DNA of 64,000 nt from Haliotis rubra (lineage: Eukaryota). Shown here piece by piece: positions 348-53,400 of this stretch (its first letter is position 1; the number at the start of each line of letters is the position of its first letter). Under the pieces are notes generated by a model. That model had not been told where the DNA came from and ran no database searches. It saw only the letters and a list, made by a program, of their open reading frames with translations. The stretch covers positions 372,001 through 436,000 of the forward strand of contig NW_025767145.1 of the NCBI RefSeq assembly GCF_003918875.1. The letters run 5' to 3'. A program made the translations under genes and the position numbers.

Positions 348-948
348 TACGGAAGCCTATTAGGGCCACGCTACGCTATTATTCAGCATCTTGTATCTTG
401 AAAATTCAACTTGCTATCTTGAAAATTCAACATCCTTTCTTGAAAATTCAACTTGTTATCTTGAAAATTCAACTTAGTGTCTTGAAAATTCAACTTAGTA
501 TCTTGAAAATTCAACTTAGTATCTTGAAAATTCAACTTAGTATCAACTTAGTATCTTGAAAATTCAACTTAGTATCTTGAAAATTCAACTTGCTATCTTG
601 AAAATTCAACATCCTATCTTGAAAATTCAACTTAGTGTCTTGAAAATTCAACATCCTATCTTGAAAATTCAACATAGTGTCTTGAAAATTCAACTTGCTA
701 TCTTGAAAATTCAACTTAGTACCTTGAAAATTCAACATCCTATCTTGAAAATTCAACTGAACTTTGTTGAATATTCAAGTGAGTATCTTGAATATTCAAC
801 TTGTTATCTTGAAAATTCAAATTAGTATCTTGAAAATTCAACTTAGTATCTTGAAAGTTCAACTTATTATCTTGAAAATTCAACTTGCTATCTTGAAAAT
901 TCAACATCCTTTCTTGAATGTTCAACTTGGTATCTTGAAAATTCAAGA
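348..948 (+). repeat. Left terminal inverted repeat: ~46-bp unique tip plus ~26 copies of 21-bp unit TATCTTGAAAATTCAACTTAG
   Basis: Read directly; explains the heptad-repeat ORFs (LKIQLSI) at 344-985. The array ends in the near-palindrome TCTTGAAAATTCAAGA. Confidence 0.95.
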
Positions 949-1012
949 TATTTCACGTGACATTGCATTGTATTATTTCATTTAGAGTACAGGTTTGATT
1001 GAGGATTCAGAC

Positions 1013-3593
1013 ATGATGTCTTTGGACAATTTCCTCAAATCTCGGGGGATAGAGCAAGAGAATATTGACAAGATGCACACTGATAAGGTATGTTTAATGT
1101 GTTTTATTGAGATTAATGCTTCTTTGAATCTGAGATATAGTCGTTTACATTAACATATATTGTCATATATAATGTGACTCGTGAATATCCGGGTTAGAAT
1201 TGATTTTCAGTAACCCACGCATGTCGAAAGAGGCGACTAACGGAATCAAATGGTCAGGCTCGCTGACTTGGTTGACACATGTCATCGGTTCCCAATTGAT
1301 TGTGTAGATCGATGTTCATGCTGTTGATCACTGGATTGTCTGGTCCAGATACGATTATTCACAGAGCGCCATATAGCTGCAATATTGCTGAGTGTGGTGT
1401 AAATCTAAACTAACTCACTCATATATAATGCAGGCATGGTCAAATATAGCATATTTTGATGTCGCCAATTTAGCATTTTCTATGCAGTATGCTTCATTCA
1501 AAAAAAATGTCCTGAAAATTCTGAAATGTTCCAAAACAAATCTGAAATCATTACATTTTGAAGTTTATTTCATTGCCAGCAGTTCGTTTCAAAGATATAA
1601 TCAAAACTTTACGTTTTAGATTGATGGTCCATGTATAGACCTGATGACTGATGAACAGCTCTCGCAGTATATTCCCGCATTTGGGGACAGATTAGCGCTG
1701 AGAGGATTTGTTAAACCTGTGAAGAGGAAACATGATGAGAGAAAACAAAGCTTATTTGAAAGACTGCGCATGAAACTGAAGAAAGGCTCATCTCCAAGCA
1801 AAGACAACCAATGCGAACAGAAATATGCCCAAGCCAAAAATGCAATGAAGGAAAGCAAAACGGTGGGCATTGGGTTGATGAAATTCGACAGGAAGAAGAA
1901 GTTTTTCGACAAGTTCGGACAAACTCTGGTGGTGGTACACGTAGCACATCATTGCCAAAGACCTCAACAAAACTGGACATTCTGACCTCAGCTAAGACCA
2001 TATTCTTTCCCAACGGAACCTCAGTAAAACTTGGAGAAGAAACGCAGTTTGACTTTGATGTCATGGATTACCAGTTTGTTAAATTAGAGGAGCAGTTCAC
2101 AATACAGCAAATAAGTGAAATAACCAAGATGAAAAATCTTCGGTTCTACCTCATCATCAAAGACAAAGATCTGAGTGAGTTACCTGATGAAACTCCAGGG
2201 CCTAGTAAACCAATATCACCAGGAACTGGAGCCAAAACATCCACTATCACATCCTCGTCTGAGTATGAAGATAAAACAACATGTTACAAAACAACTTCCA
2301 AGAACGACATCCCATTGCATGGAACTGACACATCATCTAATGATTCTCTTCCTTCTCTAACGTCAATAACTAACACCGCTGGCTGGCAACGTGACAGGGG
2401 AGCATGTCACAGAATCCAGTATGGCTGATGTCTTATTGATTGACTCCTTTCCTCCAGTACAATCCTTCACAGCTGAGGTACCTCAGGATCCCACTATAAC
2501 GGAACCTACAGAATCTAGCATTGATATTGATATGCTATTCAGTGAGTTTGAAAATGCACACAACATGGTGAAAAAACATACCATTCGCCTTCACAGAGGA
2601 CATGTCTATGAGGAGTTGATGGCAAAATTCCGAGACGAATCTTTCAATTTTTCAAAAGATCTCTTTACATTGGAAATGGTGCTACCAAATGGCGAGACTG
2701 AAATTGCTGAGGATAACGGGGGTGTTGTACGAGATGCACTTACAGAATTTTGGAAGTCTTTCTGTGATAAATGTACGCTTGGCAATGATTGCAAAGTACC
2801 TTTTCTGAGGCATGATTATTCAGATGCTGATTGGAAGTCAATTGCAACAGTGATTTTCTTCGGCTGGTCTACACAGCGGTACTTCCCTATTTGTTTATCA
2901 AAAGCTTTCATGTCCTGTGCAATCTATGGAATGGACATCTTTTCAGAGAACAAAAAAAACATGATTTCGGATTTTCTCTCGTTTTTGCCGGAAGGTGAAT
3001 CAAGAATCCTTTCTGCAGCACTAAAGGATGATTTTGACCAGGAGGAAGTCATGGACATTCTCGGGTCGCACGAATGTCGTGTGGTTCCAACCAAGGAAAA
3101 TCTGGAGAAGATCCTGGGGGAAATCGCCCACAAGGAAGTGATCCAGCAGCCCATGTATGTAAAAGACTGCGGGTTCAACCAGTTAACAGCTCTTGGTTTC
3201 GATCTGAACACCAGTTTGGAAACACTGTATGTGTCTGCAAAGCCAAATCCCCGCAAAGTGATCAAGATTTTATCTTTTCCAGACGAAATGAGTCCTGTTC
3301 AGAGTGCGACATCTGGCTTCTTAACAAAGTACATCCGGGAACTAAATTCTGATGACTTATCAAAGTTTCTACGTTTTTGTACTGGTTCTGACTTGCTTCT
3401 CACAACTGGCAATGGAGAAAACAAGCCAATATTTGTCAGGTTCAACACCCTGTCAGGGTTATCAAGAAGACCTGTCGGCCATACTTGTGGACAGGTACTG
3501 GACGTACCTGAACAGTATGACAGTTACATTGAATTCAGGGCCGAATTCAACTCACTGCTCAGAAGTGACATTTGGATAATGGACTTTGTGTGA
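1013..3593 (+). pseudogene. Transposon-borne SAM-like + HECT-domain E3 ubiquitin ligase (G2E3-like HECT); exons 1013-1087 and 1620-3593, two apparent frameshifts
   Basis: Exon 1 MMSLDNFLKSRGIEQENIDKMHTDK|gt joins in phase to ag|IDGPCIDLMTDEQLSQYIPAFGDRLALRGF (SAM-like). The frame shifts near 1900 into FRQVRTNSGGGTR...KTIFFPNG and again near 2370-2390 into the 400-aa ORF. That ORF has HECT hallmarks DNGGVVRDALTEFW, KFLRFCTGS and catalytic PVGHTC. AATAAA near 3967. Confidence 0.85.
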
Positions 3594-5239
3594 TTTAATC
3601 CAGCCTGCCACTTTGACTTTTAACACCTCTTTAATCTGAGTTTATGTGAACTTTCTGGAAGTGACTTTATTGTTCACCTTTGTTCTTGTTGTGTGATACA
3701 CAAGTGTTTTTATCATAATCCCTCCCAACATAGAAGATGTTCGTATACAGTATTTTCATTTTAGAATATAGTTTCATTTCAAGTTTCCTTCAAAGGGGTT
3801 ACTGTACAAAATGAAAGATCTCATTCTATATTGATATTTTTATATCATTTTAAAAAGTGTAAAATTATGTTGAAAAATTTATGTGTTACTTCATGCAGGC
3901 AATTGTTGCTAATGATTACTGTTCACTGTTCCAGTTGAGATTGTCACTATGAAGAAAGAGTGAAAAAATAAAACATCTCATTTTGTGTCTTGGTTATCTT
4001 TGACCACTATTAATTTGAGAGCTTAGCTTTGAAATAGGAGGTTGCAATGGAGTGATTGAAGTGGGTTTTAACAAGCACAGCGGTTAGCTGTTTGGCTTTG
4101 GTTCAAGAGGTTCCAGGTTCGAATTCCACCAAGGGCACAACAACTTAGTCTGCAATATTGAGAACTGTTCTACACGCAGTCAGGTTTGGATGCAATGTTA
4201 CACAAAACAAATTGGGGGTGCGAGCATTCTTCCTGCAACAATACAACAGCCGATATAAAGTGAAATATTCTTGAATGCAGTGTTAAACATTTTTATCACG
4301 ACGGCTGGTATTATTGCAGGAAGAGAGCAATGATTGGTTGGAATCAAAGAACCAAGGGTGGTACTACACTGAATCTCAATACTACTAGTACTCAAACTTC
4401 ACTGTCTGCAGAATACAGTTCTCCAATGCAAAGACTCACCGAACCTCTTGGTTCTATGTTTCGCGCTAACCACTGTGACATGTGCTATCATGAGTCTCCC
4501 CTTATCTAAAGTCGGGAACTGTTCTACACTCAGCAAATATACACAGAGCTTCGGGACATGGATTTTCGATGCTGACTTACTGCTAAGATTTGGCGACACC
4601 TATCTTGGTGCTAAGAGAGCTTCGAAAATCTGGGCCCTGAAACTTAAACCTAACTGAGTGCAGAACAGTAACGCCTATGCATGGATCGCTAGCTCCAGTC
4701 GCTGCTGGCAGGTGTCATAGCAGTTAACACAACGGTACATTGGTTGACCATCCTTCCTTACGACACAAATACTAGCCACTGTCATATTAAGAGCAATACT
4801 CTTGAAAGCGGCATAAAACCCCAACTCAATATTAAATTTCATTTAATTTCTTATACCAGATTTAACCGGATTAGCAATCCTGTTCCCTTGCACTTGTAAG
4901 ATTTCAGCTTAAACTGTTTTTCATACCAACCCAACTACAAACAGACATGCTGCTATATCATTTTCAATATTTGAAATTGTTTACATATTTTGCATATTTC
5001 GCTGCTCAAATAATACTATAATATATAACAAGTACCAGTTCTACGAACTGCAGTCAATGGATTGAAAGCAAATGTGAAAAATCTCTTATTTTCTCTGAAC
5101 GAAAAAGACTGAGATGACTATACAATGGCTTTATTCATGAAACATTTCTTCCATTTCTCATGTATGTATCTGCTATGTTCATCTGAGGAGCAAAGGTTGA
5201 TTTTCAGACAGTTTCGTACATCAAAGCTCTTTTCTGATC

Positions 5240-6752
5240 TCACTTCTTGAATGCAAAAGTCAAATTCTTCTTGTCATCGGGAAACTGCCATTGCATGTCC
5301 TCCATGATCAAAGTACACAGTTCATGCACTGTTGGGTCACAGTTCACCTCACCTCTCGGGGTACTCTCCTGTCTACAGAGTTCCAGAGAGGCTGGACACA
5401 CAGGCTTCAAATGATCTTCAGCTCCATAAAGTTGGGGAAGGGAGAATAGAACAGATGGTTTTCCACTAGGATTGTCGGAGTTTTTGTTTGCTCGTATCTG
5501 ATGAAAGTTCCATGTTTGTGCAACATCTTTGATTTCCTTCTGAAATGAAAGGGATGAGTATATGTTACTATTTACTGATAAATATTCGTATCTGGAAAAG
5601 ACAATCCAGTGATTAACAGCATGAACATCGATCTTCGCAATGGGGAACCGACGACATGTGTCAACCAAGCCAGCGAGCCTGACCACCCGATCCCGTTAGT
5701 CGCCTCTTACGACAAGCATAGGTTACTGAAGGCCAATTCTAACCCGGACCTTCACGGGTTACTGATATGACATCAAGTACAACATAGGTGTGATGACATA
5801 ACACATTGACAGATTTTATTGTAAAGTGTCCATGCATGCATACATTTACTTTGAAAACATATTTTAATTCATGTAAATGTCTTATTTGCTTTATATGAAC
5901 ATATGAAAATATAACACCATACCTGAATGACATCAAGGAAACAGAACTGCACCAGGCTCTTGTCAAGGTAGTCTCCACAAAATAAGTCTTCATTTTTCAG
6001 GTGCTTGAACATGTCCATCCAGTATTGCACACACTGCTTTCTCAATATACCCCACCAAAACTCAATACGTTGGTTGTGGACACTTGAGCCATAAAGAAAG
6101 CTTTCACTTCCAGCAAATCTGTCGTTGTGGTCATGTCTAAGCAACAGCTGCATCTGCTCTACATGCCTATTTTCACCACCAGCATCTGATCTGATTCTTT
6201 CTGGGCATCCATGCAGTCGTTCTACAGTGTCAAGATAATATCCAGCTACTACTTTGGGATCGTTGTTTGTCGTCCATGCATCCATCCACAAAACACATCT
6301 AGAAAATCCGTCCACACATCCGTGAATACATATGCCATAAGGTTTCAATTTATCATATCCGTCCATGTGCCAAAGTGCATTTGGGCCGGTTGAAATATAA
6401 CTGCGGCATGCAAGGCGGCATTTCTTGCGATTCCTTACTCCTTCTGGGTCAATTAGATTCATAAGTATCAAAATAGTTTCTTTTGAAACTATGAGTCCGC
6501 TCTCCTGACATTTACGATGCATCCACCTGTAACCATTACAATTACCCGATGTGTCACACTGTTGCAAAATGAACAAAGCCACTTCCATATCAGAATGGCC
6601 TTTTCTCCTGTGAAGTTTGCATTTGGACAAAACCCTTTTCAGTGTCCTTACACTTATAATCATGCCATGATATTGTGCATATTGTGAATTTCGGCGTTAG
6701 ATAATCCTAAGGAAAAATACATAGAGATTATATTGTCTCTGCTTTGCTCCAT
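5240..6752 (-). pseudogene. DDE integrase-core transposase (IS3/IS481-like); exons ~6752-5923 and 5539-5240, frameshift near 6680
   Basis: Motifs WHMDGYDKLKPYGICIHGCVDGFSR (D), RIRSDAGGEN (D), GSSVHNQRIEFWW (E). N-terminal HTH-like MEQSRDNIISMYFSLGLSNAEI.../GMIISVRTLKR. Phase-0 intron FLDVIQ|gt...ag|KEIKDVAQTWNFHQIR. PolyA signal near 5130. Confidence 0.88.
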
Positions 6753-6836
6753 TGTCATATGTCATACACAGTTCGTGTACAGAGAATTTGGAAAAGCGCA
6801 TAATGAACGAAGAACATTTCATTTAAGTACTAATTT

Positions 6837-7173
6837 TCTTGAATTTTCAAGATAGGATGTTGAATTTTCAAGATACTAAGTTGAAATTTCAAGATAGCAA
6901 GTTGAATTTTCAAGATACTAAGTTGAATTTTCAAGATAACAAGTTGAATTTTCAAGATAGCAAGTTGAATTTTCAAGATAGTAAGTTGAATTTTCAAGAT
7001 ACTAAGTTGAATTTTCAAGATAGTAAGTTGAATTTTCAAGATACTAAGTTGAATTTTCAAGATACTAAGTTGAATTTTCAAGATAACAAGTTGAATGTTC
7101 AAGATAGCAAGTTGAATTTTCAAGATACAAGATGCTGAATAATAGCGTAGCGTGGCCCTAATAGGCTTCCGTA
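6837..7173 (-). repeat. Right terminal inverted repeat: ~14 copies of the same 21-bp unit plus unique tip
   Basis: Reverse complement of the left end; same tip and same array-terminating palindrome. Confidence 0.95.
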
Positions 7174-7243
7174 GCATGCAGATCGGAGCATGAGCTGAAA
7201 ACAGAAAGGGGTTTTTGCATGGCTGTACTCTATTTATAGATTA

Positions 7244-7414
7244 GGGGCGGTGGGGTAGCCTAGTGGTTAAAGTGATGTCTCGTCACGCCGAACACCCGGG
7301 TTCGATTCCCCACATGGGTACAATGTGTGAAGCCCATTTCTGGTTGTTCCCCGCCGTGATATTGCGGGAATATAGCTAAAAGCGGCGTAAAACTAAATCC
7401 ACTCACTCACTCAC
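7244..7414 (+). mobile_element. tRNA-derived SINE family A (representative; further copies near 7667, 9975, 10980, 13680, 14125, 15306, 16215, 18472, 37770, 43513, 45232, 46417, 47982, 57939, 60082, 61385)
   Basis: Pol III A/B boxes (GTAGCCTAGTGGTTAAAG...GGTTCGATTCCC), shared body, (ACTC)n or (CAGT)n tail. Confidence 0.9.
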
Positions 7415-8548
7415 TATTTATAGATAACCAAACATTCTCATTTGGTCTGCGACATTAACAACGAGGTGACGCAAAAAAAGTCACAATATATATTGTGACT
7501 TGAATGCATGTGAATTTCGAACTGTGCATATGCACATAGCAGGTTTACAAACATACAGACAACGGTGAAACAATTCCATCACTACGTTAATATTCATATA
7601 TTGTCATATACTTGGCACAAGTAGTGTGGGTGCAGTTCAATGGTCTAAGCGAGGCTTGATCTTGGCGTAAGTGGTTAAAGCGTCCGCTCGTCACGCCGAA
7701 GACCCGGGTTCGATTCCCACACATGGGTACAATGTGTGAAGCCCAGTTCTGGTGTCCCTCGCCATGATATTGCTGGAATATTGCTAAAAGCGGCGCAAAA
7801 CCATACTCACTCACTCTGGCGTTGTTATACGTAACATAACACACAAAAACAAAAGCAGCATCTTTCAGTGTCATTTACTTTATATGCACTATATTTACAC
7901 GTGTCGTATATTTTGAAACATGTACTTACAGAGGGTATTTGCATCAATATGAAACAGAATCCTTGCCAGCCTATCCAGTAAGAGACTTTGGACCAGGCAA
8001 ACCCATGATTGCATGAATTACAAATATCGCAATGGAGCATGATCAGGACACATCATCATTAGGTACAATTCTAACACGCGATTGTAAAGCGTTTCTAAAT
8101 TAGCAGGGGCACTCGAGCCCAGCCGTCTAACGCACATTTTGCTGTGAAGAGTCGCATCCCTTTACTGTGCCAGGATCTGCCCTTGTGGCATCACATTTTT
8201 CAACACCGTAACGGTGTTAATAGGTTTCACCAAAGCGCTAAACATAACGATTTCCTCACTAAAGTCTTTTTTGTTGAACAAGTCATGATGTAACTGAACC
8301 AATAGCAAAATAGTATACTGAGGGAAAGGAATAAGGGAACACCACTTCATCGCACTTTTCCTCTATTTATTCTCAGATTCTCACCAACAGTGCGATACAA
8401 AGCTTGATCAGAAACCTGGAAAAGAATAACGGAACATTAGTGCTTTAATGTGTTCCCTTATTTTTTTCCCTCAGTATATAAGGCATCAAACTTTGTACTT
8501 GTCTTTAAGTCACATGTAAAAGAATCATGAAAGCCTCTGGTAACACCC

Positions 8549-9475
8549 CTACCCATGCTTCAAGCGCAGGTAAGAAGATGAATGAGAAGCGCTGGGAAAC
8601 AGTTCAGAGTAAGATGGAGGAGGGTCAGTGATGACGTCACAGATGACGTCATACGGTGGTGGGTGAGGGTTGATGCTAGATAGGGACTGGGTAGAAATGA
8701 TGTCACAGGGAGATGAAGATTCTGAAGTTGGGAAGGATTCGTGAATAGGTGGAGCTGATGGTACACATCGCTCTGTCACACCATCTACGGGAATCGGACG
8801 CAAGTTTCTACACCTGTCCGTACACCTGTGTTCTTTCAAAACCACCTTGATCCCGTCAACACCTTTGTCGCTATCTCCGTACGTCCGAGAAACAGAATGA
8901 ACAGTAGGTTCTCCAAGATGGAACATACTATCAGGTCCTACCATCCCTTTCAGCCCACAGATGACAAGCTCCCCGTGCGACTCGTGATATGAGAAGTGTA
9001 TCAGTTCATCCAAAGCCTTGCAGTCTTTTACGTTCCTACCCACGCTGTCCACAAATATACTTTCTTCACCCAACACCTCCTCAATTAAAACCATCTCTCC
9101 CTCTCTCACTTCCCGGCCGACTGTCTTCATCAACCATGACGTTGCTCTCTTCATCCGTGCTACCATAGGCGAACTGACTGATATGGGGAACATACCATTC
9201 TTGTACGCTGTTCTCATATATTCAGTTACCATTCGTAATTGCTCGTACCTTTTCAGGTTACTTTGCCATGGGTTTTTGGAGGTACAAGGCCTTGATAGCG
9301 GAAAGTTGACAGCCACGGTGTCGCCTGATCGTAACGTACTATACAGCTCGCCCGCTAGAGTTATCGCTCCTGTTTCTTTTGATACGTCACTTCCTCTTTT
9401 GTCAATTATGGCTACTCTGTGTCCATGCGGCGTTGTGGTGTACGTGGAACTATGTTTCCGGAATAATATACCCAT
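8549..9475 (-). CDS. Alpha-kinase (eEF2K/MHCK-type) domain protein, probable pseudokinase, with PSAP/PPxY-rich C-terminal tail
   Basis: LIEE...IHFSYHESHGELVICGLKG...LGEPTVHS...YGDSDKGVDGI...HRCTDRC matches the alpha-kinase C-lobe and Zn finger. The start is placed at ACCATGG (9475, MGILFRK) just after a pyrimidine-rich splice acceptor. A possible 5'UTR exon donor lies at ~10189. Confidence 0.8.
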   Translation of the reverse strand: MGILFRKHSSTYTTTPHGHRVAIIDKRGSDVSKETGAITLAGELYSTLRSGDTVAVNFPLSRPCTSKNPWQSNLKRYEQLRMVTEYMRTAYKNGMFPISVSSPMVARMKRATSWLMKTVGREVREGEMVLIEEVLGEESIFVDSVGRNVKDCKALDELIHFSYHESHGELVICGLKGMVGPDSMFHLGEPTVHSVSRTYGDSDKGVDGIKVVLKEHRCTDRCRNLRPIPVDGVTERCVPSAPPIHESFPTSESSSPCDIISTQSLSSINPHPPPYDVICDVITDPPPSYSELFPSASHSSSYLRLKHG

Positions 9476-12400
9476 GGTGAATTTTCTTCTGAAAAATTGC
9501 GAACAAAAATTGAAATCATTGAATACACTGGACATTTAACCCATCAAAATACAAACTAATATATTGGTAAATAATAAGAATCTATGAACATTTTTCAAGT
9601 AAGACTTGAAATAAATTCTGCAAAGCGAAACCAGAGTGATAGACGACAAAGTAATACTCTCTAATTATAGGTGTAGTGAAACACTGTTATATCGAAGTTG
9701 AAGGGATCTACGTATATACTTTGAGTTATTCAAGGTTCGAGACAACCGAAAAATAGGGATTGACAGTGACCAAGTTTTAAATTCGTGACAACCGTGGGTT
9801 CGATACATCAACGTTGTTTGACAGTTTTCGATTTCTAATTGTTCGAGCGCATTCGTTATTCCAGAACTGAATGTACTTTGAATCCTGTACTTGAATTTAC
9901 TGACATGAAAACAAACATTCACATTACATGTGTCTAAATACCAATACAGTGATAATGAATGTATAACTAAAAGAGTGAGTGAATGATTTTGGTTTTACAC
10001 CGCTTTTAGCAATATTCCAGTAATATCAAGGCGGGGGACACCAGAAATGGGCTTCACACACTGTACCCATGTAGGGAATCGAACCCGGGTCTTCGGCGTT
10101 ACGAACGAACGCTTTAACCACTAGGCTACCCCACAGCCCCTAGAACTATGTCTTCATAAACAGAGTGCAAGATTATGGGTCATCTTACCTGATACCATCC
10201 GCATCAGCTCAGAAAGCTACCAACAACTCCTCATGTCATGGCATTATAGATTCAAACTCTGTTATATATACATGTATGTATGGTTTGTCACGTGTTTTAT
10301 GTTTACATTCAAAAATATACACAAGTCATTTCGTTTAGTTCCTCGAAAGAAAGCACATAGTTGTTGTTACGGTCTGTTTACTCAAAGTTATATTTTTACC
10401 CATTTCAAACTTCCTTGACGTGTGGATATGAATAAATGTTCACTTCTGTTGCCAGCACATGTTGCAACAGCGACAATCATAACTTTACCTAGTTCCCTAT
10501 TGCGACGATAAAACAGTATCACTTCCGGATTAAAATATATCCTGAGCAACCTATACCGTAGAAGAGGCGACTTAACCTGGTGGTTCGCTGGCTTGGTTGA
10601 CTGCCCATTGTATCCCGGCGTCGTGGACAGATGCTCATGATATCAGCCTTGGGTTTATGTTACCTAGACTCAACCCGTGAATATCCGTGTTAGAACTGGT
10701 CTTCCGTAACCAATGCTTGTCGCAAGAGGCGACAAACGGGATCGGGTGGTCAGACACAATCATGTCATCGTTTCCCAGTTGCGTAGATCGATGATCTATG
10801 CTGTTGATCAGTGGATTGTCTGGTCTAGACTCGATTATTCACTCACTCACCTGCAATACCGTTTTGAACATTTTGTAAACAGTGTAAACGTGTCAGTGCA
10901 AAACATGTACAAAATACGAACGATCCCCTGAATACCATTCTTTATGCCAGCAACCCATGCAAAAGGCCAATAACGGGATGACTGACTGACTGGTTTGGTT
11001 TTACGCCGCTTTTAGCAACATTCCAGCAACATCACGGCGGGGGACACCAGAAATGGGCTTCACACATTGTACCCATGTGGAGATTCGAACCCGGGTCTTC
11101 GGCGTGACGAACCAACGCTTTAACCACTAGGCTACCCCACCGCCCCACTAACGGGATGAGGTGGTCTGGTCCGCTGACATGGTTGAAACACATCACCGTA
11201 TCCCAATTGTGTAGATCGATGCTCATGCTGTTGATCACTGGATTGTCTGCTCCATCTCGATTTTTTACAGAGCGCCGACATATCGATGGGATATTACTAA
11301 GTGCGGCTTTAAACAACAAACAAAGACACAAACAAACAAACAAAGAAACACACCACTCTAAATGTTGTGGAACACGAGTGATTGACATGAGTTATCGACA
11401 ACCTAATAACATACACAACATCAGAAATAACTGCTTTTCTACAGATTTTGTCAACGTGACGTTTGCACACATAAATTGGGGTTGGGGGGTGGTGGTGGTT
11501 GGGTGGGGTGGAGTGGGTTTACATGTAAAAGAGTCTGAACGCATATCGGGTATTTTTAACACCAACACAAACTTGTAGAAGCTTTAAGCTTTAAGTGGAT
11601 CGCTTGTACAAACACTCTATTGAGTCACACCCTGAATCTATGTATGCATCAAGGCTGCCACATCACGGTTTTCTGAACAATTACATGCATCCACTGCGTT
11701 GATAACATGCAGGTCGCATTCCTTGCATGCACAACGAATTAAATTACATAGTGGCTCTATATATAGACTCCTTGGCTTAACCCATGGTCTTTAAGTGAAG
11801 CATTAACTGGAGTGTGGTGCACTGATCAAACTCCACGCTGGCCTACCTGTCTTGACTGGTGCAGTTTGATTATACGTTCTCTGTGTAAGATCAGATGTAT
11901 GACAAACATTTGTATAAAATTCCTTCAAGCAAATATTTGAAAATATCAGTTGTTCGTTGTTTCTTGCTCAAGGCCGCACTCAGCAGTATTCCAGCTATGT
12001 GGCGGCGGTCTGTAAATAATCTGGACCAGACAATTCAGTGATCAACATCATGAGCATCGATCAATTGGGATACAATGACATGTGTCAACCAGGTCAGAGA
12101 GTCTGACCACAAGATTCTCTTACGACAAGCATGGGTTACCGAAGACAACTCAAACCCAGACCTTAACGGGTAAAATATCAGTTGCATATGTCATAATTAT
12201 GAACTTTTCGAACTTGTTTTCGCAAACTTTGACAGAAGTTATCAGCAATAAATCTTCGTAAGACGCCACTTCAGAGTAAATGTTCAGGGTCGTCTTCTAT
12301 TGATTATACTTTGAAATGTATCTGCTGATGTGAATAATAATTACTTCAACGTCACCATGGGGCGGTAGGTTAGCCTACTGGTTAAAGCGTTCGCTCGAAA

Positions 12401-47400: not shown

Positions 47401-50400
47401 GACAAACAAACGATACAATCACAGAGCCTAACTGAGCCCCAGTATAACTCGTACAATAGTTATTATCATGATTATGTGCTAGAATCTGCTCTGCTCTGTA
47501 AACCTAAATTGGCATGGGGTGACAAGTTTGATATAATATCTCTGTTTTGTAAGTTGAGTTGATACACAATGTGATAATATTCTATACGTCAAAAACACCA
47601 AAATCTACTCACAAAGATGCCAAAATTAAATTGCTGGTTAAAAGAGAAAAACATTCAGCGGAGACTTTAGTAACAATTCTGATCTTACATCATTACTGTC
47701 TTTCATTTCTCAAATGAACACCGGAGAGTCAACATAAAGCACTATTAATGTCAATGAATATTTACTATGAAGCAGTGAAAATTATCCACTACACAATCAG
47801 GTAATTACTCACAGAGATATCCTCACACGCTCCGCTGAAGTCGAAACCACAGGTGCTTGGGTCGTAATACCGATAAGACTTCACTTCAAGACCAGCGTGT
47901 CTGTAAAACACAATTATACCAAACATTGTATGTTGGTCACACTCAAATCTTATTTCAGGTGTGGATGGCCACATAAAGAATGACTGACTGACTGACTGAG
48001 TTTGGTTTTATGGCTTTTAGCAATATTCCAGCAACATCATCACGGCGGGGTCACCAGAAATGGGCTTCACACATTGTACCCATATGGGGATTCAACCTAT
48101 CTCGACATGGCGAGCCAACGCTTTAACCACTAGGCTACCCCATGCCCCCATAAAGAATGAACTCAAGCCACTTTCAAAATAATATTCATAACAAAACACA
48201 ACTCTATGCAGAAAAAATACCTAGAGTAAAATGTGAAAAAACAAATCATGTCACGCTGCATTTCAATGGAAACATTAATGCCATCAGAATCAATATTTGT
48301 GCTACGGTCTCAGTTAGAATTCAACATGAGGAATTGTACAATAAACCCCATATTTCACAATGTCTGTTGTATTGTAATGAGTTTCGTGATAGCTAGGACC
48401 TCACAACATGTAACCATGGTAACAAGACTCAGTATCCATCTCACCAATGGATAATATTCTTACACCAGTTATAACATACAGTACTTCAGTAAAGCTACTA
48501 ACCACACAACACCTTACACAACAAATACACAACAGAGGTCTGATCACAGGTAACAACAATTCAGCATCACAAATTAACCATATTTGAGATGAACATTTGT
48601 TATTGCCAAGCCAAACATGACTGGCACAACAAAGAAGACCACTCACTTGAAGATTGGTGTGTGGTTCCCCCAAGATGGAGACGGGATGTAGAATACTTTG
48701 CTGGTTGAGAACCACTTGGCCTGGAATACAAGCATCATACCGACGAGTGAGTGAGTGAGTGCCAGAGTGAGTGAGTGAGTGCGAGAAGAGCGGCAGTGTT
48801 CACGAATCATGTTTCAAAGGAACTGGACATTGTGTCCTGTAAGTTTCAGATGTCTGTCTGACCCATTGAAAATTCACAGGACCCATAGAATAAAATTAAA
48901 CACACATTTCAGATTTAGCATTTCTTATAATTGGCACTGAAATAATAAACAAACATAAGATTTATAAACAGCAAACAGGTGTCACATGTCCCATATAACA
49001 ACTTCAGTCAAAGTCATTGTGAAATATACAGTCAGACACTGGGGCCGGCGGGTTGTAGAGTTTTATCGGACTGTTGGCAAATCTGCCGGATTTGTCAGAG
49101 GGTCAGACGCTATTCGTGAACACTGGAGTGGGTGAGTGCGAGAGTGAGTGAGTGAGTGAGTCCAAGAAGAGTGAGTGGGTGAGTGCGAGAGTAAGTGAGT
49201 GAAAGGGTGACTGCAAGAGTGAGTGAATGAGTGAGTGAGCCTGACCACCTGATCCCGTTAGTCGCCTCTTACGACAAGCATGGGTTACAGAAGATCAATT
49301 CCAACACGCATCTTCACAGGTTTAAACTGTTTGAATGGCATTTAGAAAAGACACACATAAAGAGGGAATATTTCAACTACTGTGATATGAGGAACAGAAC
49401 GTTTTTACCGAGTACCGAGTCTACCGAGATAATCTTACTCCTTCATCAGGCCCCGATTTCTCGAAACAAACTTAAAGTTTTTACTCAAATTTCAAACTGA
49501 GTTTGACAATTTGAAACAGCTGAATTTTTAACTCAACTGCATTTTTAAAATAAAAAAGCCCAAACAAATTAAGTAATCCATCCACCAAACTCAAATTGTT
49601 TAGTATGTTTGAGTTTAATATCAGTTTCAGTTCATTCTGCTAATGCATTTTCTCTATTTGAGTGAAAACTCGAACTTAAGTCAAAACTCAGACTTAAGTT
49701 TGTTTCGAGAAATCGGGGCCAGATCGATAAACGAGTAAGAACAGACGCCAAAAAGTTGACATCCATAATTCCCCCCTTTTATGATAATATTTTACTCACG
49801 AAGAACGCTGCTCCGATACGAAGAGAGCCTGTACCAGAAATACCCTGAGCAGTAACATTCTGAAAAAGAAAAGGTGATTATACAAATTCTTTTATTGACT
49901 ACAATGCCAATTCATTTCTTTATTTTAGTGACATTTTAGGAGCTTTGACCCGAGTGGATTGTTTGGACCAAATCCTATCAAGAACATACAACAACATAAC
50001 ATGTAACAACAATACATACACCAGCGGAAAATACACCATCAGAACATACACCAGAGGAACACACACCATCAAAACATACACCAGTGGATCATACAGCACC
50101 AGAACATACAGGTGGAACCATCATACACCACCAGAACATACACCACATAGAACATACACCACATACAGCAGTGGAACATACAGCACCAGAACATACAGCA
50201 GTGGAACATACAGCAGTGGAACATACACCACCAGAACATATACAGCACCAGAACATACAGCAGTGGAACAGCATAACACCACAGCAGAACATACAGCAGC
50301 ATACAGCAGTGAACATACACCAACATACACCAGTGGAACATACACCACCAGAACATACAGCAGCAGAACATACAGCAGCCAGAACATACAGCACCAGAAC

Positions 50401-53400
50401 ATACAGCAGCAGTGGAACATACAGCACCAGAACATACACCAGTGGAACATACACCAGTGGAACATACAGCACCAGGAACATACACCAGTGGAACATACAC
50501 CACAGAACATACACCACCAGAACATACATACAGCAGTGGAACATACAGCACCAACATACATGGAACATACAGCAGTGGAACATACAGCACCAGAACATAC
50601 ACATATACACCAGTGGAACATACACCACCAGAACATACACCACCAGAACATACACCACCAGGAACATACAGCACCAGAACATACAGCACCAGAACAGAAC
50701 ACCACCAGAACATACAGCACCAGAACATACACCACCAGAACATACAGCACCAGAACATACAGCAGTGGAACATACAGCACCAGAACATACAGCAGTGGAA
50801 CATACACCACCAGAACATACAGCACCAGAACATACACCACCAGAACATACAGCACCACCACCAGAACATACAGCAGTGGAACATACAGAACATACACCAC
50901 CAGAACATACAGCACCAGAACATACACCACCAGAACATACAGCACCAGAACATACAGCAGTGGAACATACACCAGAACATGGAACATACAGCACCAGAAC
51001 ATACACCACCAGAACATACAGCACACCAGAACATACAGCACCAGAACATACAGCACCAGAACATACAGCACCAGAAACATACAGCACCAGAACATACAGC
51101 ACCAGAACATACACCAGTGGAACATACAGCACCAGAACATACACCAGTGGAACATACAGCACCAGAACATACACCAACATACAGCACCAGAACATACACC
51201 AGTGGAACATACAGCACCAGAACATACACCACCAGAACATACAGCACCAGAACATACAGCACCAGAACATACAGCACCAGAACACCAGAACATACAGCAC
51301 CAGAACATACAGCACCAGAACATACAGCACCATACAGCACCAGAACATACACCAGTGGAACAGCACCAGAACATACAGCACCAGAACATACACATACACC
51401 AGTGGAACATACAGAACACACCAGAACATACACCACCAGAACATACAGCACATACAGCACCAGAACATACAGCACCAGAACATACAGCAGCACCAGAATA
51501 CACATACACCACCAGAACATACACCACCAGAACATACAGCACCAGAACATACAGCACCAGAACATACAGAACATACCCAGTGGAACATACACCAGTGGAA
51601 CCAGCACCAGAACATACACCAGAAACATACAGAACACCAGAACATACAGCACCAGAACATACAGCACCAGAACATACACAGCACCAGAACATACAGCACC
51701 AGAACATACACCACCAGAACATACAGCACCAGAACATACAGCACCAGAACATACACCACCAGAACATACACCACCAGAACATACAGCACCAGAACCAGGA
51801 ACATACAGAACATACAGCACCAGAACATACAGAACCAGAACATACACCAACATGAACATACACCACCAGAACATACACCAACATACAGCACCGATGAACA
51901 TACAGCACCAGAACATACACACTAGAACATACAGCAGAACATACACCACCAGAACATACACCAACCAGAACATACACCACCAGAACATACACCAGAACAT
52001 ACACCACCGAACATACAGCACCAGAACATACACCACCAGAACATACACCAGTGGAACATACAGCACCAGACCACATACATACACCAGTGGAACATACAGC
52101 ACCAGAACATACAGCACCAGAACATACACCAGTGGAACATACAGCACCAGAACATACACCACCAGAACATACACCAGTGGAACATACACCAGAACATACA
52201 CCACCAGAACATACAGGAACATACACCACCAGAACATACAGAACATACACCAGTGGAACATACAGCCCAGAACATACACCACCACATACAGCAGTGGAAC
52301 ATACACCACCAACAACATACAGCAGTGGACACCAGTGGAACATACACCACCAGAACATACACCAGTGGAACATACAGCACCAGAACATACACCCAGAACA
52401 TACACCACCAGAACATACAGCAACATACACCAGAACATACACCAGTGGAACATACAACATACACCACCAGAACATACACCACCAGAACATACACCAGTGG
52501 AACATACACCAGTGGAACATACACCACCAGAACATACAGGAACATACACCAGTGGAACATACACCACCAGAACCACCAGAACATACAGCACCAGAACATA
52601 CACAGCACCAGAACATACACAGCACCAGAACATACATACAGCACCAGAACATACACCAGTGGACATACACACCAGTGGAACATACACCAGTGGAACATAC
52701 ACCACCAGTGAACATACAGCACCAGAACATACAGCACCAGAACATACACTCACCAGAACCAGAACGACCAGCAGGAACATACACCAGTGAACATACAGCA
52801 CCAGATGATACAGCAGCGAACATTAAAGAGAACATACAACGGAACATAGACCACTAGTACATACAGCAGCAGAACATACATACACCACCAGGTCATACAC
52901 CTGCAGAACATACACCAGCGGAACATTCATCACCGGAACATACCAGATTGTCTTTCAGGGCCTGGCAATCATCCCCGAAAGCCAGAGCAGCTGAAGCTTT
53001 ACAGAAGTCTGCGAGACCAGAGATGGGCAAGTATTCCTTGTCCTGTTTGGCTGCAAGCATCTGCTGCTCTGCCTGAAAACAATCATTACAAACAATGAAT
53101 ACAATTAACACAAGAAGAACGAAATATTTATAACATATTTACTACTATTTATATTTTTGTCAGATAAAAGATGACTGAAATGACTGGTGTCTGTATAATC
53201 ACCCAATGTAGGCTGTCAACATAATTGAAGACATTGGGTACAATGTTTGATGACATATTGCGTTAACAAGAGTTTGAAAAGTGGTCAAAGTGGCATGGTG
53301 ACCTTGAAAATGAGGTCAAGGTCACCAAAATCGACTGGTGTCTCTATAATCGCCAAATGTAGGCTGTCACCAAATTTGAAAACATTGGGTACAACAGTTC

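Follow-up and report, generated by a model that had tools for sequence, protein, structure and literature searches.

DNA transposons are usually viewed as a transposase and its ends. PIF/Harbinger elements are two-gene transposons, in which the transposase is accompanied by a small Myb-like DNA-binding accessory protein without an enzyme domain. The element described here is an insertion in the genome of the blacklip abalone (Haliotis rubra), at positions 348-7173 of a 64-kb stretch of DNA (contig NW_025767145.1, positions 372,001 to 436,000; this whole stretch is called the window, and coordinates refer to it unless a locus is named). It is a bounded DNA transposon of 6,826 bp with two convergent genes, one for a DDE transposase and one for an accessory protein that ends in a very divergent HECT domain. 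IS3EU/GingerRoot, the superfamily to which it is compared, is a known one, documented almost only in Repbase. Its published diagnostics are TA..TA termini and a 6-bp target-site duplication (TSD) (PMC10045372, Kojima 2023; PMC6839031, 2019), together with long terminal inverted repeats (TIRs) and an integrase/IS3-like DDE transposase without HHCC zinc finger, in elements from fish, oyster, cnidarians and insects (PMC6839031; PMC10045372). Fungal IS3EU elements have TIRs longer than 30 bp, ends of the form TAYGG..CCRTA, a 6-bp TSD and an alpha-kinase gene opposite the transposase, with TET/JBP as a third gene, and DNA transposons are described as picking up and exchanging passenger genes (PMC12730594, Kojima 2025). 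Enzymes of the ubiquitin system are also encoded by Helitrons and Helentrons, whose deubiquitinases (OTU, VTD) have conserved catalytic residues and are thought to protect transposition proteins (Erven et al. 2022, PMC9741609).

The abalone element fits a cut-and-paste transposon of the IS3EU/GingerRoot superfamily by its ends, TSD, TIRs and transposase type. Its termini are TACGG..CCGTA, against TATGG..CCATA and TACGA..TCGTA in the related elements of Nile tilapia and firefly presented below, and its 6-bp TSD is GCATGC (tilapia GAAAAC; firefly locus L007 CCTTAC; a short rainbowfish element AGTATT). The TIR tip is longer than 30 bp (43 bp) and the DDE transposase has no HHCC finger. The published descriptions of IS3EU/GingerRoot that were consulted are silent on a HECT or ubiquitin gene, whereas here the second gene is defined by its domains, selection and co-inheritance. 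The fungal TET/JBP-positive elements likewise have TAYGG..CCRTA ends, a 6-bp TSD and a second enzyme gene opposite the transposase, but their partners are an alpha-kinase and TET/JBP, those of the animal elements being a ubiquitin-like/HECT or a ubiquitin-like/Ser-Thr kinase protein. PIF/Harbinger elements have the same obligate-looking two-gene layout but belong to another DDE superfamily, with other TSD and ends. The Helitron/Helentron deubiquitinases are transposon-encoded ubiquitin-system enzymes with intact catalytic residues as well; they differ in removing ubiquitin and in being fused in the RepHel polyprotein of rolling-circle elements, whereas a separate ligase-type gene is found here in a DDE element. 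The reading preferred in this work, with a probability of about 0.65, is that the window contains a decayed copy of a two-gene IS3EU/GingerRoot family whose accessory enzyme serves the element. The features of this copy are as follows (SINE, short interspersed element; L011, a second abalone copy; ORF, open reading frame).

342-347, no strand: left TSD GCATGC, read directly, same as 7174-7179
348-390, plus strand: left TIR tip, starting with TACGGAAGCC, TA terminus; 43/43 against the right tip
393-946, plus strand: left subterminal array made of 21-bp units (about 26), whose core TTGAAAATTCAA is a GAAnnTTC palindrome
1013-1087, plus strand: accessory gene exon 1, 75 nt (MMSLDNFLKSRGIEQENIDKMHTDK), first half of the SAM-like helical domain; fits the family N-terminal consensus FLxxR...ID
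1088-1619, plus strand: accessory gene intron 1, GT..AG, with a SINE-like insert that recurs elsewhere in the window
1620-3593, plus strand: accessory gene exon 2, frame-broken at 1901 (private 1-bp deletion) and within 2372-2428 (common to L011)
1860-2170, plus strand: ubiquitin-like (beta-grasp) region with an invariant GGGTR loop; from alignments and Foldseek on model md2db1c47e44a
2517-3590, plus strand: HECT domain, N-lobe and C-lobe; Pfam HECT 4.8e-7, tblastn 41% identity to the tilapia HECT, structure matches of the family model
3486-3488, plus strand: codon of the catalytic-position Cys, PVGHTC; 34 residues follow before the C-terminus
3967-3972, plus strand: AATAAA 3' of the accessory gene
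5130-5135, minus strand: transposase AATAAA (TTTATT on the plus strand), downstream of the gene
5240-5539, minus strand: transposase exon 2, 99 codons and stop; the conserved C-terminal LYxxLR helix goes on out of frame below 5240
5540-5922, minus strand: transposase intron, GT..AG, with a SINE-like insert; same position in tilapia, firefly, mussel and Xenopus
5923-6663, minus strand: transposase exon 1, 247 codons, rva_4/rve integrase core (Pfam rva_4 4.7e-32) with D101 (6363-6361), D160 (6186-6184) and E201 (6063-6061)
6664-6760, minus strand: remnant of the N-terminal helix-turn-helix (HTH) (MTMEQSRDNIISMYFSLGLSNAEIHNM...), out of frame with the ORF starting at 6663; compared with the consensus LIxLYFxLGLSxKEIL
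6839-7127, minus strand: right subterminal array made of 21-bp units (about 14)
7131-7173, minus strand: right TIR tip; 43/43 against the left tip
7174-7179, no strand: right TSD GCATGC, read directly

The TIR tip TACGGAAGCCTATTAGGGCCACGCTACGCTATTATTCAGCATC has exactly 2 occurrences in the window, at 348-390 (plus) and 7131-7173 (minus), with 0 mismatches and 0 occurrences expected by chance. Searching for the array core TATCTTGAAAATTCAAC with at most one mismatch gave 24 matches on the left and 14 on the right, that is 38 in the window against 0 expected; this core contains the short palindrome TTGAA-AA-TTCAA. The TIR is thus a 43-bp perfect tip, or 204 nt at 95% once the arrays are counted. 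The junctions read aacgtGCATGC/TACGG and CCGTA/GCATGCagatc (slashes marking the edges of the element) and, since identical GCATGC hexamers flank both tips, the site before insertion read aacgtGCATGCagatc. The hexamer sits within TGCATGCA, in agreement with a palindromic site described from the letters in an earlier note on this DNA; as a preferred target, this palindrome was ruled out because the TSDs elsewhere are GAAAAC, CCTTAC and AGTATT. TIR-tip and homology searches found no further copy of the element within the 64-kb window.

The accessory gene runs on the plus strand from an ATG at 1013 through exon 1 (1013-1087), a GT..AG intron (1088-1619) and an exon 2 that starts at 1620, to a stop codon at 3591-3593; its last 400 codons score 30.1 bits with Pfam HECT, against a curated cut-off of 23.9. 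The transposase gene lies on the minus strand (exon 1 6663-5923, intron 5922-5540, exon 2 5539-5240), and its product is identical to the 346-aa public gene model P0111. Pfam recognises rva_4 (4.7e-32) and rve (3e-5) in it, the codons of D101, D160 and E201 are intact in the window, and these three columns are invariant across 16 relatives in the transposase alignment, whose N-terminal 100 residues have a consensus resembling an HTH and lack a conserved His/Cys quartet. Both gene ATGs are situated 66-79 bp inside the subterminal arrays. The earlier note had described a fully bounded element with IS3EU-like ends, holding two convergent, intron-containing genes with their own polyadenylation signals, one for an integrase-core DDE transposase and one for a HECT protein retaining its catalytic Cys, both ATGs being placed 65-85 bp inside the TIR arrays; this description agrees with the measurements given here, from the 43/43 tips and the published IS3EU diagnostics to the Cys codon at 3486-3488.

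The accessory protein of the family, of about 600-700 aa, begins with a SAM-like helical domain, which is followed by a ubiquitin-like beta-grasp; a disordered linker that evolves fast then leads to a HECT domain that is complete and very divergent. An AlphaFold model (ma216ff800eb4) of the tilapia protein P0008, for which an alignment of 36 sequences was used, shows three domains predicted with confidence, with a pLDDT (predicted local distance difference test) above 90 over residues 317-640. Residues ~308-640 of the model match the bilobed HECT of HUWE1, UBR5, NEDD4, SMURF and E6AP (Foldseek E 7e-12 to 1e-9, probability 1.0, 14-18% identity), and among reviewed (Swiss-Prot) proteins the fold also matches UPL7, G2E3 and HERC5/6. 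Pfam HECT is above its cut-off for the window ORF, P0008, P0044 and P0086, scores ranging from 23 to 50 bits. The column of the catalytic-position Cys is at least 90% conserved in the 36 sequences and the C-lobe motif LRFCTGS is invariant; the family profile places a near-invariant HTC (ahTC) on the catalytic segments of HUWE1 and UBE3C (aSTC). In common with cellular HECT E3 ligases (HUWE1, UBR5, NEDD4, E6AP, G2E3), the element protein thus has a C-terminal bilobed HECT, in which a Cys lies ~35 residues before the C-terminus and the C-lobe motif is of the FxTG type. It differs from them in its low identity (14-18%), in a unique N-terminal SAM-like and ubiquitin-like module, and in being encoded by multi-copy, patchily distributed, transposon-borne genes.

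Residues 106-208 (model md2db1c47e44a, pLDDT above 90) form a beta-grasp, with Foldseek matches to the SATB1 ULD, UFM1, GABARAP, SUMO and RAWUL; the probability of these matches is ~1 and their E-values are weak (3e-5 to 3e-3), with template-modelling scores by target up to 0.62, and they are uniform in fold. Residues 1-60 are a confident helical bundle in the model, and no fold match was obtained for this bundle alone. The profiles named in the earlier note (HECT, SAM and integrase core) were recovered in part: HECT and rva_4 are above their cut-offs, whereas SAM_3, on P0008 residues 3-51, is below (E 0.057, 13.8 bits against 22.6).

A search for homologues of the HECT ORF gave 110 matches of ~600-690 aa in teleosts, molluscs, firefly and Xenopus, and their genomic context was then fetched. 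The convergent HECT/rva_4 pair was found in nine independent HECT-anchored loci, and is seen in Nile tilapia, Archocentrus, Melanotaenia (rainbowfish), Photinus pyralis, Mytilus, Xenopus laevis and two ENA contigs. In abalone, tilapia and firefly it is contained within TIR/TSD-bounded elements, and three of the elements in which the pair recurs carry 6-bp TSDs and TAYGRAAGCS termini. In tilapia (L002, 8952-15806), the element has ends TATGGAAGCC..GGCTTCCATA, the TSD GAAAAC, 21-bp arrays with core CGAAATTTCG, and both genes intact, the transposase intron being at the same position as in abalone; its ends share a 243-nt inverted segment carrying CCAAT and TGACGTCA motifs. The firefly element (7,821 bp) is represented by two copies, L006 and L007, which are 100% identical at loci 43 Mb apart, and L007 has a clean TSD CCTTAC with ends TACGAAAGCG..CGCTTTCGTA. 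At L006 (9530-9545, 17350-17375) the left end is GA instead of TA, without a clean 6-bp TSD, and a TATCCTGA(C) string is present on both sides; this copy may have integrated aberrantly, or the assembly may be at fault. In Melanotaenia boesemani, a non-coding element of 1.37 kb (L008:7709-9076) is located a short way upstream of the full HECT/transposase pair; its inverted ends (TACGGAAGCG...) are perfect and its TSD is AGTATT, and it is probably an IS3EU derivative resembling a miniature inverted-repeat transposable element.

The reverse test was anchored on the transposase in metagenome contigs and considered the 23 loci for which 3 kb or more of downstream sequence was available. A tblastn match to the HECT family was present in 13 of them, every one convergent (the HECT C-lobe of L022 being also confirmed by Pfam), and profile comparison added L039, with a divergent HECT start, bringing the count to at least 14/23; a kinase takes the place of HECT in one other locus. 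A profile search of 1.84 billion representatives yielded 1,245 accessory clusters at 50% identity (E up to 1e-30), hence a very large family, as expected of a transposon gene. Public names of its proteins are misleading: one is called 'fumarate hydratase, class II', and in another gene model leucine-rich repeats are fused to the N-terminal module (P0060, P0270). A recent capture of a host HECT gene was ruled out because every strong homologue shares the architecture of the element protein and none is a canonical HECT.

Maximum-likelihood trees of the HECT domain and of transposase exon 1 were built for 8 and then 21 paired loci. Clades present in both gene trees are the cichlid pair (support 100/100), a group of four from fish, frog and metagenomes (100/99), two tight metagenome pairs (100/100) and the same 11-member 'intronless' clade (80/100), and the HECT and transposase distance matrices are correlated (Mantel p 0.003 for 8 pairs, 0.0007 for 21 pairs). 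The tree congruence that the earlier note suggested testing holds for the major clades, and does not extend throughout the intronless clade, where supported conflicts occur. The ratio of nonsynonymous to synonymous substitution rates (dN/dS, or omega), calculated from one copy each of tilapia and Archocentrus, is well below 1 in the HECT domain (0.19); it is 0.28 for the N-terminal and ubiquitin-like part, 1.3 for the linker, 0.12 for transposase exon 1 and 0.23 for transposase exon 2, which shows that in intact copies both genes are under purifying selection and that the accessory gene is constrained almost as strongly as the transposase. Because the convergent pair recurs in bounded elements, the major clades coincide and HECT is under purifying selection, the comparison of these sequences supports the HECT gene as an integral conserved component of the element family, as the earlier note had supposed, and not as a chance host capture.

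The search with the N-terminal module returned nearly exclusively HECT proteins, plus P0283, in which the ubiquitin-like module is joined to a protein kinase. This arrangement is seen in context on the JGI metagenome contig Ga0126337_10010266 (L081:126-6245), where a terminus reads TACGAAAGCC and inverted subterminal arrays have a 7-bp unit; its rva_4 transposase (415 aa) is intact, as is a convergent 751-aa ORF combining the ubiquitin-like module with Pkinase (5.8e-46). In L069:1729-6847, too, a convergent gene joins the ubiquitin-like module to a Ser/Thr kinase. Together with the alpha-kinase of fungal IS3EU, these kinase variants suggest that the accessory slot holds an exchangeable, catalytic protein-modifying effector rather than a mere scaffold.

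In the mechanism that we propose, the DDE transposase (~385 aa, with HTH, rva_4/rve core and one conserved intron) would bind the TAYGRAAGCS tips and the palindromic arrays and integrate with a 6-bp stagger, and each terminal region would double as promoter of the adjacent gene. The GAAnnTTC core, which resembles a heat-shock element, is seen in the tilapia arrays as well, so that transcription might respond to stress. The SAM-like/ubiquitin-like module of the accessory protein would reach a target that the C-terminal enzyme then modifies; this target could be a host factor that restricts or silences transposition, or the transposase/strand-transfer complex, which would need removal from DNA for repair. 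That the accessory protein is a working E3 made for the benefit of the element is predicted from sequence and modelled fold, and is judged slightly the better bet. A broader proposal is put forward tentatively and at somewhat less than even odds: animal IS3EU elements may be obligate two-component transposons, in which a constant SAM-like/ubiquitin-like targeting module carries an exchangeable head (HECT mostly, Ser/Thr kinase in some) that makes transposition possible by acting on the transposase complex or on a conserved host factor.

Several points weigh against the two-gene reading with a ligase at its centre. Ligase activity is a prediction from sequence and fold; the domain is just 14-18% identical to studied HECTs, with modest Pfam scores (23-50 bits), and G2E3, whose HECT domain reportedly does not act as a ligase, is among the closest Swiss-Prot folds. 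The omega values come from one pair of copies, and membership of IS3EU is assigned by diagnostic features rather than by a phylogeny with Repbase proteins. The window copy is unable to make either full protein. Of the transposase loci with 3 kb or more of flank, eight showed no accessory gene, and most of these lack long ORFs altogether; no transposase was found within 5-10 kb of the HECT loci L001 and L005. Inside the intronless clade, L027 pairs with L086 in the HECT tree (100) and with L042 in the transposase tree (99), and because this position conflicts with high support the linkage of the two genes is not absolute; exchange among related elements, or mispairing on short contigs, occurs in this clade according to the trees. 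Of the two solo HECT loci, L001 is a contig of a 'Candidatus Thiodiazotropha sp.' metagenome-assembled genome (GCA_040793965.1) encoding an animal-type SAM-like/ubiquitin-like/HECT protein (P0012), and is most likely bivalve host DNA binned with the symbiont.

The divergence of the HECT domain and the presence of G2E3 among the closest predicted folds would also be expected if the protein were needed without being a ligase, as a non-catalytic partner comparable to the Myb-like protein of PIF/Harbinger, which recruits or imports the transposase or binds the arrays, the HECT fold serving as an interaction surface. The N-terminal module, which is the constant part across HECT and kinase variants and resembles the oligomerising ubiquitin-like domain of SATB1, is in line with such a role. 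We nevertheless regard it as rather unlikely: across phyla, the catalytic-position Cys and LRFCTGS show no variation or are conserved to at least 90%, HECT has the lowest omega of the protein (0.19), and the variants have exchanged HECT for a different enzyme, a kinase that gives a full match to Pkinase (5.8e-46), which is hard to explain for a passive surface. It is improbable, in our view, that the HECT gene is an ancient cargo, captured once and kept either without selection or by selection for an effect that has no bearing on transposition, whether selfish or directed at the host. Passenger genes are indeed picked up and exchanged by IS3EU and other DNA transposons, such as TET/JBP in fungi (PMC12730594), some of the tree conflicts suggest movement of genes between element lineages, and the solo loci L001 and L005 are compatible with cargo; yet molluscs, vertebrates and insects share a conserved position, orientation and placement of introns, the value of omega is far below 1, no close host HECT gene exists among strong matches that are all of the element architecture, and the accessory gene, like the transposase gene, starts directly inside a terminal array.

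Whether the window copy itself is functional is a separate matter, for which the second abalone copy (L011, H. rubra contig QXJH01000022.1), 98.4% identical to window 1148-7173 with different flanks, is informative. A private 1-bp deletion at 1901 shifts the frame within the ubiquitin-like domain of the window copy, where L011 reads straight through, and a frame change at ~2372-2428 in the linker of the HECT gene is common to both. A 22-nt GT..AG 'intron' at 2391-2412 that would restore the HECT frame was rejected as too short for a metazoan intron, and the break was read as a frameshift common to L011. In the transposase, the conserved N-terminal HTH (MYFSLGLSNAEI...) is out of frame with the ORF from 6663 in both abalone copies, and the conserved C-terminal helix is broken in both, by a frameshift in the window and by an in-frame stop in L011. 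SINE-like insertions are present in both introns and in the spacer of the element. It is very improbable that the window copy is intact and autonomous, its frameshifts being indel errors of a long-read-based assembly, even though the TIR tips are identical at 43/43 positions, the DDE triad and the HECT Cys are unbroken, and some indels differ between the two copies. Two of the frame breaks (HECT linker, transposase HTH) are common to 98.4%-identical copies at different loci, so that real decay, or copying from an already defective master, is favoured over assembly indels, and the different breaks of the C-terminal tail and the SINE insertions point the same way. The intact ORFs to be confirmed according to the earlier note are hence missing from this copy: as both genes bear frameshifts, it is not a working two-gene element but a decayed, dead one. 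A second, divergent IS3EU-HECT element was observed on L011 at ~3800-9196, 125 bp from the end of the window-like copy (HECT gene 8241-6416, terminus TACGGAAGCCTTTTAGGGCC), of which transposase exon 1 and the far TIR are apparently missing.

No published description of the IS3EU-HECT pairing was found. No paper naming both IS3EU and HECT was found in the literature searched, Repbase entries and possible second-ORF notes in them being outside its reach; the GingerRoot, IS481EU, fungal TET and DDE-survey papers make no mention of HECT or ubiquitin, and searches for a transposon-encoded ubiquitin ligase, for HECT with integrase core or transposase, and for G2E3 with transposon gave nothing relevant. 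If the two-component reading is true, these would be the first DNA transposons known with their own E3 ligase. A widespread branch of a little-studied superfamily keeps a ubiquitin-ligase-type gene under purifying selection, at least in molluscs, insects, fish and amphibians, and has a kinase-bearing sister form. Should the enzyme be active, it would be an example, open to direct test, of a mobile element that manipulates the turnover of host proteins or its own transpososome, much as viruses do with their E3 ligases, and the naturally intact tilapia and firefly copies are material for a possible new two-component transposition system. As more than 1,200 clusters are publicly annotated 'uncharacterized' or misnamed, 'HECT/G2E3-like' genes that are multi-copy in the genomes of fish and invertebrates may belong to transposons and not to adaptive host expansions. 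The '20 copies of G2E3' counted as an adaptive expansion in a sea cucumber genome paper (PMC9700323) may be such genes, and are given here as a candidate only.

Other features of the window were noted as well. An intronless 328-aa ORF of the alpha-kinase family (8549-9535, minus strand; Pfam 1.2e-12) is located 1.4 kb past the right end of the element, and the clusters resembling it consist of short alpha-kinases from molluscs and Basidiomycota. It was rejected as a part of IS3EU, having no bounding TIRs, SINE copies only and no transposase link; no alpha-kinase was found among 91 loci, and its proximity to the element is an unexplained coincidence. Many tRNA-derived SINE-like repeats occur in both orientations (1190-1420, 5590-5760, 7244-7413, 7670-7816, 9973-10142, 11046-11146 and others); two are inside the introns of the element, and these repeats yield spurious ORFs and inverted-repeat calls. 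A minisatellite at 49981-52943 consists of ~200 copies of a 15-bp unit (AGAACATACACCAGC) and has an extreme strand skew.

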